NCBI GenBank assembly: GCA_039096225.1 | Contig: JBBPEB010000011.1 | Coordinates: 248,001 to 312,000, forward strand | Direction of reading: 5' to 3' | Length of the DNA stretch: 64,000 nucleotides | Source: Blastocystis sp. Blastoise | Lineage: Eukaryota > Protista > Bigyra: Opalinata | In this document: positions 42,597 to 46,476 of the stretch, piece after piece | How positions within the stretch are numbered: the first letter of the stretch is position 1 | Layout: the number at the start of each line of letters is the position of its first letter | Notes under the pieces: generated by a model | Database searches by the model: none | Told to the model about the DNA's origin: nothing | The model's input: the letters and a program-made list of their open reading frames with translations, nothing else | Made by a program: the position numbers and the translations under genes

Positions 42597-43223
42597 ATGC
42601 CTGAAGACGTCACTATTGAGCAGACAAGTAATGAACAACAAAATGAATTTCGTGATTATCTAGCTACTTCTGGGTTTCTTGGCACTTTCACGAATGCATT
42701 TATCTCTTTATATAATGCTAAACCTAGACCTGAAGATCCTTTTGAGTATGTATTTCATTTGTTTTTATTTGTAGTTGATATATATATGATTTTATGTTCT
42801 TTTATATATTAATGCTATTCTGATTATATCTGTCTATTCTTTTTATGAATATATGTAAATAAATGTATTCATTTCATGTATGAATACGTTATATCTATAT
42901 AGATTTTTGAAAAATATAATATATATATATAAATTTTTGAAAAATATATTATATATATATAGTTTTTTGAAAAATATATTATATATATATAGATTTTTGA
43001 AAAATATATTATATATCTATATAATTTTTTGAAAAATATATTATATCTATATAGATTTTTGAAAAATATATTATATCCTGATTATGAGAAAGAAAAGAAA
43101 AGACTTGAGAAAGATATTGAAGATTTTAATGCAAGAATAAAACAACTTGAAGCGGATATTGTTAAGGAAAAACAAGATTATGAAAAGAAGCTTAATCGAT
43201 TAACTCCTCCTAAACAAAATTAA
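42597..43223 (+). CDS. MYCBP: c-Myc-binding protein (AMY-1)-like small coiled-coil protein, 1 intron
   Basis: EFRDYLATSGFLGTFTNAFISLYNAKPRPEDPFE|FLKNILYP followed by a coiled coil. Confidence 0.75.
42891..43072 (+). repeat. Six tandem units of about 30 bp copying the intron acceptor and exon start
   Basis: ATAT(A/C)TATAT-AG-ATTTTTGAAAAATATATT repeated; AG retained in four units. Confidence 0.9.
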
Positions 43224-43473: not shown

Positions 43474-44785
43474 TTAATTACAGTCTTCTCCATCCCAGCA
43501 ATCTTTATAAGTTAATTCAGGAGGTAAACAAGAATCACCTAATACACAACGTCTTCCTTGATCTAATTGTTTAATTTCATTCATTTCTTCTTCAGTTAAA
43601 GAGAAATCAAAGATATTCATATTTTCAACAAGACGAGTAAGAGTTGTAGTTTTAGGAATACAAATAGTACCTCTTTGAATAGCCCAACGAATACATATTT
43701 GAGCAGGAGATTTATTATATTTCTTACCAATAGCAATTACACGAGGATCTTCAGTAGGAGCTATCTTATTAGGACTATATATATATATTAATTATTATTA
43801 TTATTTTATTATATTAATAATAGTTATTATTTTATTATATTAATAATAATATTATTATATATTTATATACTCTGTATTATTAGGATCAGGTCTAACTAAA
43901 GGAGCATAAGCAGTTAAATAAATATTATGTTCTTTACAGAAATTGAATAAATTCCATTGTTGAAGACTAGGATGTAATTCGACCTATAATCAATATAAAG
44001 TATATAGGTATAGTATATTTATAATATTAATTATATTATGTTAATTTATTTGTAAAAAAAAAATATTATCTATTATATATATACTTGATTATTACAAGGT
44101 AATATATTACAATGAGGTAAGAATTCTTTCAGTTTCTTTACAGTAAAATTACTTACACCAATACTACGAATTTCTCCCTTTTCAACTAATTTTTCTAATT
44201 CTCTCCATGTATTTGTCATTCTATCTACATTCCAACTATATATATAAATAAATTAATAAATAAATTATTAAAAAAAAAAATAAAATTAAAATAAATAAAT
44301 ATAAATATAAATATAAATAATAAAAAAAAACACAAAATATACCCTAATCTTGTTTCAGCTCTTCTTTCATTAAAGAAAGGAACAGAGAACCAATTATTAG
44401 GATCACGTTTAGCTTCATCTTCAGGAAGAGTAGCATATTCAAAAGGCCAATGAATTAAGTAAAGATCTAAATAATCAACTTGAAGATTCTTTTTACTTTG
44501 AGCAAAAGCTTTAGATACATTTTCAGGAGCAAAATCAGTACACCATAACTTGGTTGAAATAAATAACTCTTCTCTCTTAACAAGTCCATTATCAATAGCT
44601 TCTTTAATAGCTTCACCAACATATTGCTCGTTACTGTATGCAGCAGCACAATCGAAAAGTCTATAACCAAGCTTAATAGCCTCGATTACAGAATCATGAA
44701 TCTTCTGAGGTTCACTCTTCCAAGTTCCTAAACCAAAAATAGGCATCATATAACCAGAAGATAATTTAATTGAAGGAATAGACAT
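43474..44785 (-). CDS. Aldo-keto reductase, paralogue A (3 introns)
   Basis: [50 protein letters not shown]. Confidence 0.93.
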
Positions 44786-45210
44786 TGTGATATCAAATAC
44801 AAAGGAAAATAACTTGTTTTAATTATTAAATGAATAATAAAATATGTGAAATACAACATTCATAAAGATTTTTTCTCGAAAAACGAATATTTGAAAGCAG
44901 TTGTTTCGTTTTATTTTTGCAAATGAAAAGGAGATTCTTGTGGCTAATCTTTTGATTGTGTTTAATATCATCATATATGATTCTATAGGTGTCAAATAAC
45001 GTTATTTTTGTGTATGTTTATTTTTATCTGTTCATTTAATTATAGGTTATTAAATTATAAAAGGTGCTTATTTGTTAACATTAAAAAGTATATTTATCAA
45101 AATAAAAAAAAAAATAAATAAAACAGAACTATTTATAAAACTATAATCTATAATATAATATAATATATATGAAGAATTATGAGAATACAAAGATTTGGGA
45201 AATAATCAAC

Positions 45211-46476
45211 TTAATTAACATTTTCATTATCCCATATTTGTTCCTTTGTCATTTCAGGTTTAGTTAAGATATCTCCAACACATCCTCTTCTTCCTTCATC
45301 AAGTTTCTTGATTTCACTCATTTCTTCTTCAGTTAAAGAGAAATCAAATACATTCATATTTTCAGGTAAACGAGAAATAGTTACTGTTTTAGGAATACAA
45401 ATAGTACCTCTTTGAATAGCCCAACGAATACATATTTGAGCAGGAGATTTATTATATTTCTTAGCAAGTGAAAGAATTAAAGGCTTTGTCATAGGAGATA
45501 TCTGATTTTCACTATATTTATTATTTATGATTATATATATTATATTTATAATCATATATATTATATTTATAATTATATGTTATATTTATAATCATATATA
45601 TTATATTTATGATTATATATATTAGATTTATGATTATATATTTATATACTCTGTATTATTAGGATCAGGATGTCCAAGAGGATAATAAGCAGTTAAATAA
45701 ATATTATGTTCTTTACAGAAATTATATAATTCCCATTGTTGTAACTGAGGATGTAATTCGACTTGATTATTACAAGGTAATATATTACAATGAGGTAAGA
45801 ATTCTTTCAGTTTCTTTACAGTAAAATTACTTACACCAATACTACGAATTTCTCCCTATATTAATATTAATAATAATAATAGTATTATTATTATATCCCT
45901 TTTCAACTAATTTTTCTAATTCTCTCCATGTATTTGTCATTCTATCTACATTCCAACTATATATATAAATAAATTAATAAATAAATTATTAAAAAAAAAA
46001 TATAAAATAATAATAAAAAAACACAAAATATACCCTAATCTTGTTTCTTCAGTTCTTTCATTAAAGAAAGGAACACTAAAATAATTATTAGGATCACGTT
46101 TAGCTTCATCTTCAGATTTAACTACAGTTTCAAAAGGCCAATGAACCAAATATAAATCTATATAGTCAAGTTGAAGGTTCTTTTTACTTTGAGCAAATGC
46201 TTTAGATACATGTTCAGGAGCAAAGTCATTACACCATAGCTTTGTTGTGATAAATACATCCTCTCTCTTAATCAATCCACATTCAATAGCTTCTTTGATA
46301 GCACTACCTAATTCAACTTCATTACCATAAACAGCAGCACAATCGAAATGTCTATAACCAAGCTTAATAGCCTCAATCACAGCATCATGAACTTTATTAG
46401 GTTCACTTAAATAAGTTCCTAAACCATATGAAGGAATTTCATAACCACTAGATAACTTTATATAAGGTACAGACAT
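45211..46476 (-). CDS. Aldo-keto reductase, paralogue B (2 canonical introns plus a 43-nt non-canonical insert; could be a pseudogene)
   Basis: Same AKR motifs as paralogue A; the frame is restored only if the insert at 45856-45898 is removed. Confidence 0.8.

Follow-up and report, generated by a model that had tools for sequence, protein, structure and literature searches.

How can two neighbouring genes share a core without a single nucleotide substitution and still differ by two introns, one within that core and one at its edge? The question is posed by a tandem pair of aldo-keto reductase (AKR) genes, here called A and B, that lie in a 64,000-nt stretch of contig JBBPEB010000011.1 of Blastocystis. 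We refer to this stretch as the window; it corresponds to C34:248001-312000 of a 33.3-Mb genome with 34 contigs and ~23% GC, which carries the GenBank name 'Blastocystis sp. Blastoise' and fits the AT-rich genome of the Russian-tortoise isolate Rus-B (PMC12129017). The initial annotation of the locus explained the discordance by very rapid ongoing intron gain or by cDNA-mediated conversion erasing introns, and considered the pair a candidate for an undescribed process. Our analysis of the two genes and their paralogues leads to a simpler answer: two known processes suffice, gene conversion within the tandem pair and the repeated loss of introns that the family had inherited, and a new process is not needed. 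The two genes are 1.7 kb apart, and their coding sequences (CDS) are 81.4% identical. Their features, with intron sites numbered as in the whole gene family, are the following.

43474..44785, minus strand: AKR gene A (GenBank WA158_008367, protein P0121), 335 codons from the conserved MSIPS start
44785-44343, 44235-44085, 43983-43871 and 43774-43474, minus strand: coding exons of gene A, placed by exon translations
44236..44342, minus strand: intron 1 of gene A, site p3, phase 2 after residue 147, 107 nt, GT-AG
43984..44084, minus strand: intron 2 of gene A, site p5, phase 0 between NQ and VE, 101 nt, GT-AG, lacking in B
43775..43870, minus strand: intron 3 of gene A, site p6, phase 2 after residue 235, 96 nt, GT-AG
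45211..46476, minus strand: AKR gene B (GenBank WA158_008368, protein P0001), 335 codons
46476-46034, 45956-45899, 45855-45650 and 45511-45211, minus strand: coding exons of gene B
45957..46033, minus strand: intron 1 of gene B, site p3, 77 nt, GT-AG
45856..45898, minus strand: intron 2 of gene B, site p4, phase 0 between EK and GE, 43 nt, GG...AG, lacking in A
45512..45649, minus strand: intron 3 of gene B, site p6, 138 nt, GT-AG, containing a repeat with a 21-nt period

The GenBank protein P0001 maps exactly to the exons of B, with the 43 nt removed, and P0121 agrees with the exon map of A except for 12 additional residues at the N terminus. These residues come from an ATG at 44863 that is followed by a 42-nt GT-AG intron at 44854-44813 (annotated start 44813..44863, minus strand); none of the paralogues has such an addition, and the conserved start is at 44785. 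Searched exon by exon with the Pfam model Aldo_ket_red (PF00248; curated cut-off 24 bits), gene A scored 85.9 bits in exon 1, 32.3 in exon 2 and 46.5 in exon 4, and gene B 76.6 bits in exon 1, 41.3 in exons 2b and 3 taken together and 48.7 in exon 4. Two positions of the AKR alignment, Lys79 and His112, do not vary at all, and Asp45 and Tyr50 hardly do; all four residues, which we take to be the Asp-Tyr-Lys-His catalytic tetrad of the family, are present in both genes. Both A and B are intact AKR genes.

The similarity between A and B is concentrated in the middle of the genes, where the following segments are identical.

44083..44279, minus strand: core of gene A, taken as converted (exact blocks 44279-44175 and 44179-44083, plus 43983-43969 past the intron)
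45748..46000, minus strand: core of gene B, taken as converted (exact blocks 46000-45896 and 45857-45748; the 43-nt intron is the sole interruption)
43649..43726, minus strand: second identical block, 78 nt in exon 4 of gene A, equal to 45463-45386 in gene B

The core consists of a 105-nt block (A 44279-44175 and B 46000-45896) with 44 nt of intron 1 and exon 2a, a 97-nt block (A 44179-44083 and B 45857-45761) covering exon 2b, and a 15-nt block (A 43983-43969 and B 45762-45748) at the start of exon 3, which encodes the conserved VELHP motif. Between the first two blocks B has its 43 nt, and between the last two A has its 101 nt, so that the tract is not continuous. Within the CDS, the longest run of identity between the genes is 180 nt (CDS 430-609), somewhat longer than the approximately 165 coding nt noted at first, and the maximum among 20000 permutations was 67 nt; the run of unchanged silent codons had P = 4.5e-4 (permutation). 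None of the 34.7 synonymous sites in the tract differ, against a proportion of differing synonymous sites (pS) of 0.39 in exon 1. The synonymous divergence (dS) varies along the gene, from 0.56 in exon 1 (residues 1-120) and 0.17 just before the tract to 0 within it, and then from 0.34 in exon 3 to 0.70 at the end of exon 4. The exon 1 value is similar to those that separate A or B from the paralogue L004 (0.69 and 0.77). The earlier view of A and B as diverged paralogues with a recently converted core was thus borne out: judged by their silent sites, they are old paralogues in which the core has recently been homogenised.

The identity is not confined to coding sequence. Intron 1, initially described as nearly identical, is so only at its ends, where the two genes share the first 19 nt and the last 44 nt; its middle contains a 30-nt length difference and several mismatches. 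Two further identical blocks, of 33 and 37 nt, span the border of exon 1 with intron 1 and that of exon 3 with intron 3, and the whole of exon 2 of A (151 nt) is identical to B. Selection alone was considered as the source of the identity and is ruled out by the identical silent sites and intron bases. As the identity crosses exon-intron borders, the core is the result of gene conversion at the DNA level. The 78-nt block in exon 4 is a less certain case of conversion, because that region is unusually conserved at silent sites in all paralogues and conversion and constraint are therefore inseparable. Of the two introns said to distinguish the copies within the tract, the 43-nt insert of B is indeed absent from A, and it has GG...AG ends with no GT and is flanked by AGGGA. 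The 101-nt GT-AG intron of A and its absence from B were also confirmed, but this intron marks the border of the tract and is not enclosed by it, with only 15 identical nt beyond. In general terms the pattern resembles concerted evolution between tandem duplicates: a pair with 81% identity has a short island of perfect identity that includes non-coding bases, and the intermediate divergence of its flanks suggests repeated events. It differs in that the tract encloses one intron difference and ends at another, and either a discontinuous tract, two separate patches or a later deletion is therefore needed to explain it.

To place the two introns in the history of the family, we searched the organism's own genome with exon 1 and found four paralogues beyond A and B. 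The GenBank proteins P0002, P0003 and P0030 were mapped onto these loci, and L004 was mapped by hand. The state of the two discordant sites in the six genes is as follows.

C34, window 43474..44785, minus strand: gene A, p4 absent, p5 101 nt
C34, window 45211..46476, minus strand: gene B, p4 43 nt with GG donor, p5 absent
C22:332k: paralogue L003, p4 146 nt with GG donor (L003:1203-1348), p5 absent
C22:318k: paralogue L004, p4 159 nt with GT donor, p5 absent
C34:431k: paralogue L005, p4 absent, p5 361 nt
C18:488k: paralogue L006, p4 55 nt with GT donor, p5 187 nt

Site p4 falls in phase 0 after residue 167 and site p5 in phase 0 after residue 198, and both position and phase are constant among the paralogues. 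Four of the six intron sites mapped vary among the genes, while p3 and p6 are kept in all six. Only L006 has both the p4 and the p5 intron, and the reciprocal presence of one or the other is found in two pairs, A/B and L003/L005. The 43 nt of B are moreover related in sequence to the p4 intron of L003: the first 29 nt match at 28 positions, the GG donor included, and both introns open with the same GGATATAATAATAATA. Paralogue L004 (L004:1501-3043, corresponding to C22:318696-320238 on the plus strand) looks intact by the exon map and contains five introns, one of them private after residue 110; no protein for it was among the best 120 matches listed by either of two protein searches.

Trees and codon tables were computed from the exons joined per gene. 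The six genes of the tortoise isolate form one clade, the sister of which is a group of metagenomic proteins, and with the converted columns removed their tree is ((L004,(A,B)),(L003,L005,L006)). We considered whether conversion could be masking two ancient gene types that differ in their introns, A with L005 and B with L003 and L004. Approximately unbiased (AU) tests rejected both groupings (p = 9e-4 for A+L005 and p = 6e-4 for B+L003+L004), even without the converted columns. The minimum numbers of changes on the tree are two at p4, three at p5 and two at p1. On this topology the p4 intron was lost at least twice and the p5 intron at least three times, making loss a recurrent event in the family, and the distribution of the introns places the origin of both sites before the duplication of A and B. 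Blastocystis-like AKR genes among the metagenomic relatives have no intron at p4 or p5. Either these introns arose at some point before the expansion of the family, then, or the metagenomic lineage lost them. The AKR genes are like other known cases of differential intron loss in gene families in the exactness of the losses, the variation among sites and the conflict with the gene tree; they differ in that A/B and L003/L005 repeat one reciprocal p4/p5 pattern. The six genes make a useful system for studying intron loss, as three of the sites account for no fewer than seven independent losses and two pairs are reciprocal.

The proposed very rapid ongoing gain fails on the same data. Newly gained introns in A or B are ruled out because paralogues occupy both sites, because the insert of B is homologous to the intron of L003 and because there is no family of copies from which the inserts could have come. 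For the last point, we searched the genome at the DNA level with the introns of A and B, and no near-identical, introner-like family was found, although this is a weak test as simple repeats were skipped; the matches obtained were the locus itself, the L003 intron and low-complexity AT repeats, 78-94% identical over part of the query. The initial annotation had itself named ancestral introns, lost long before the conversion, as the finding that would speak against it. The occupied p4 and p5 sites in the paralogues bear out that both introns are ancestral, whereas the losses may have come before or after the last conversion.

The p4 intron of B deserves attention for its ends. The 43 nt can be removed by six equivalent cuts, none of which is GT-AG, GC-AG or AT-AC; the single cut that ends in AG opens with GG, and this GG...AG cut, the only AG-ending one to keep the frame, departs from the canonical U2-type ends. 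If retained, the 43 nt would shift the frame and lead to a stop 18 codons on. A 5-nt direct repeat, AGGGA, is found at both ends of the p4 intron in B and in L003. The corresponding repeats measure 0-1 nt at the GT-type p4 introns of L004 and L006 and 0-3 nt at p5 (2 nt in A), and the copies without the p4 intron, A and L005, have exactly one AGGGA unit at the junction. The GenBank models of B and L003 both excise the GG intron exactly, and they come from a pipeline in which junctions needed three reads and gene models were picked for RNA-seq-supported introns (PMC12129017). The splicing of the 43 nt is thus predicted, and the models and the pipeline give it indirect support, not proof. Two other readings of the insert were rejected. 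For a U12-type or AT-AC intron, there is no AT...AC cut and no U12-type branch-site motif was seen by eye; a GT donor nine bases upstream (TTA/GTTGAA, the slash marking the cut) is in frame but would drop the residues VEK that are kept in the GenBank protein. A second point against this donor is that all mapped GT donors in these AKR genes have an A at +3.

GG donors occur outside the AKR family as well. A YbaK-like gene contains a 75-nt intron (L029:1939-2013, corresponding to C22:665804-665878) with the borders GCA/GGAATT...TTCTTAG/GGATTA and an in-frame stop inside, and by eye GG...AG is the sole AG-ending cut of this intron. In a cyclophilin gene, the six intron sites read all had GT and none had a GG donor. 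The GG-AG introns may represent a minor class of introns here, or the GG may stem from errors left in the consensus; T-to-G errors of this kind are a rival explanation for isolated cases and a poorer one where B and L003 have the same GG. The main text of PMC12129017 does not mention GT-AG or non-canonical splice sites, and confirmation of the recurring GG-AG introns by reads would add a modest new detail to what is known of splicing in tortoise Blastocystis.

What remains is to combine the conversion with the intron differences. A continuous conversion tract would either copy or erase the 43 nt, and therefore the losses are older than the conversion, or the p4 intron of A was deleted later, or the template was a transcript. 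We favour the first of these, with a probability of roughly 0.55: old introns at both sites would have been lost differentially, and DNA-level conversion, as a separate process, would have left the intron differences alone. The common ancestor of A and B would have had introns at both p4 and p5, of which A later lost the one after residue 167 and B the one after residue 198. An ordinary conversion between the neighbours would then have homogenised ~210 bp, from the last part of intron 1 through the whole of exon 2 to the beginning of exon 3, halting at the 101-nt intron of A and leaving the 43-nt intron of B unconverted. This could have happened in a discontinuous tract, in which the 43-nt heteroduplex loop was resolved separately from the flanking mismatches, or in two short patches that each ended at a heterology. 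Both the order of loss and conversion and the survival of the heterology are inferred.

Several points weigh against this explanation. A continuous conversion tract cannot keep a 43-nt heterology in its middle, and the solutions to this, a discontinuous tract or two very recent patches of ~100 nt, are each uncommon. Orthologues from two other tortoise isolates were not among the best 120 matches listed per search in two protein searches. The GenBank models, together with the pipeline as described in PMC12129017, are the basis for the assembly of the locus, for the GG base and for the splicing of the 43-nt intron. Finally, the p4 loss of A may be older or younger than the conversion, and because of this the older-loss explanation and one with the reverse order both stand.

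In the reverse order, a single tract would have extended from the indel in intron 1 to the p5 intron of A when both genes still had the GG intron, and A would have lost p4 afterwards. The loss would have been either a precise deletion between the AGGGA repeats, caused by slippage or by microhomology-mediated end joining, or the outcome of recombination between A and the spliced cDNA of A. We regard this as possible, though as a clearly less probable course of events than older losses. It needs one contiguous homology tract of ~240 bp and not two of ~100 bp, and a deletion between the AGGGA repeats, present at both ends of the GG introns, gives the junctions of A and L005 exactly. For the p4-less genes A and L005, moreover, the sister or nearest gene has the GG/AGGGA form of the intron, and both GT-donor p4 introns, in L004 and L006, with their 0-1 nt of homology, have been retained. 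On the other hand, a rare deletion would have to arise and become fixed before any substitution in ~250 bp, and the late date given to it is reached indirectly. The p5 intron has been lost at least three times with a microhomology of just 0-3 nt, and microhomology is therefore not the general route of loss in the family. If conversion did come first, intron loss would have outpaced point substitution at the A/B locus.

A more specific proposal, which we consider doubtful, is that in this Blastocystis lineage a class of GG-AG introns with AGGGA-type repeats is precisely and quickly excised from DNA, by microhomology deletion or by transcript-templated repair from one paralogue to another. Loss at such sites would then outpace point substitution, and the p4 loss in A would be younger than the tract. 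The weak GG donor and the 5-nt repeat at p4 could promote an exact deletion. The locus is like the known microhomology-mediated deletion of introns in that the 5-nt repeat spans the GG-type p4 intron and the intronless copies retain one unit; it is unlike it in that this applies to p4 only, with 0-3 nt at p5, and no deletion intermediate was observed.

The cDNA-mediated conversion of the initial annotation is, in our view, unlikely. Under this explanation a spliced or partly spliced cDNA or RNA of B was copied into exon 2 of A and erased the p4 intron of A in the same event. The loss is precise and flanked by identical exon sequence on both sides, as such a copying predicts, and the whole exon 2 of A is identical to that of B. 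The identity nevertheless runs 44 nt into intron 1 and in other blocks straddles the borders of exons 1 and 3 with the introns that follow them; a spliced template cannot give identity across such borders, which counts against the transcript route. The template would also need to have kept intron 1 with the weak GG intron already out, and the family shows neither a 3' bias nor joint losses of adjacent introns, the p6 intron being kept in six of six genes. The same comparison holds for reverse transcriptase-mediated intron loss in general (the Fink model), which the AKR genes resemble in the precise removal of single introns with the frame intact and from which they differ in having no 3' bias, no adjacent losses and an identity that extends into introns.

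Still less probable is an artefact of assembly or polishing, in which nanopore consensus calling or short-read polishing across near-identical paralogues created the tract of identity, the GG base or either intron difference. The genome was assembled with Flye in metagenome mode from nanopore data of a xenic culture and polished with racon and short reads (PMC12129017), a procedure in which such errors are conceivable. The GenBank models excise both introns exactly, as if transcripts fit the assembly; the GG and 28 of the 29 following bases recur at the homologous site on another contig, and long reads could be assigned to the right copy by its diverged flanks, which are unique. The least credible explanation is recent gain of one or both inserts, by double-strand break repair with short direct repeats or from an introner-like element: the AGGGA repeats flanking the 43-nt insert resemble the short repeats reportedly found at new introns in Daphnia, and the metagenomic Blastocystis-like genes are intronless at both sites, but paralogues that split off before A and B separated have introns at both sites and in the same phase, L006 holds both introns, the insert of B has its homologue in L003 and no multi-copy family, and three or four hits at the same two sites would be required. 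Compared with introners and transposon-driven gain, as described in PMC9860276, the AKR introns are similarly short, AT-rich inserts with a short direct repeat, and they differ in having no near-identical genomic copies and in occupying sites common to old paralogues.

Scans in which discordant introns are scored between paralogue segments that look young should take a warning from this locus. An intron difference within a converted tract mimics a newborn intron, and it was the paralogues in the same genome that revealed the combination of differential loss and concerted evolution.

Exchange within the family seems to extend beyond the tandem pair. Approximately 132 nt of L003 (1349-1451 and 1320-1348) are ~94% identical to B (window 45870-46000), at a gene-wide dS near 1. 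The last 45 nt of intron p3 are identical at 40 positions (shuffled sequences had a mean of 34.8 and a maximum of 40), exon 2a at 56 of 58 and the beginning of p4 as given above. The stretch suggests an older conversion between contigs, with exon 2a as a family-wide conversion hot spot, and the GG donor may have been spread by such inter-paralogue conversion.

Three minor observations concern the introns, the surroundings of the pair and its relatives. A search of the retained introns against Rfam gave no match, a single match to a miRNA family in exon 4 being at chance level (E = 0.85). Downstream of A, at 42860-43103 in the window, there is a tandem repeat with a period of ~30 nt and six to seven TATATATAGATTTTTGAAAAATATAT-like copies. 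One of the metagenomic relatives, L030:1733-2812, is located on a contig with 37% GC; none of the six intron sites interrupts its reading frame, and after GLG it contains a 30-nt insert with a stop, which is the typical size of a Blastocystis intron.

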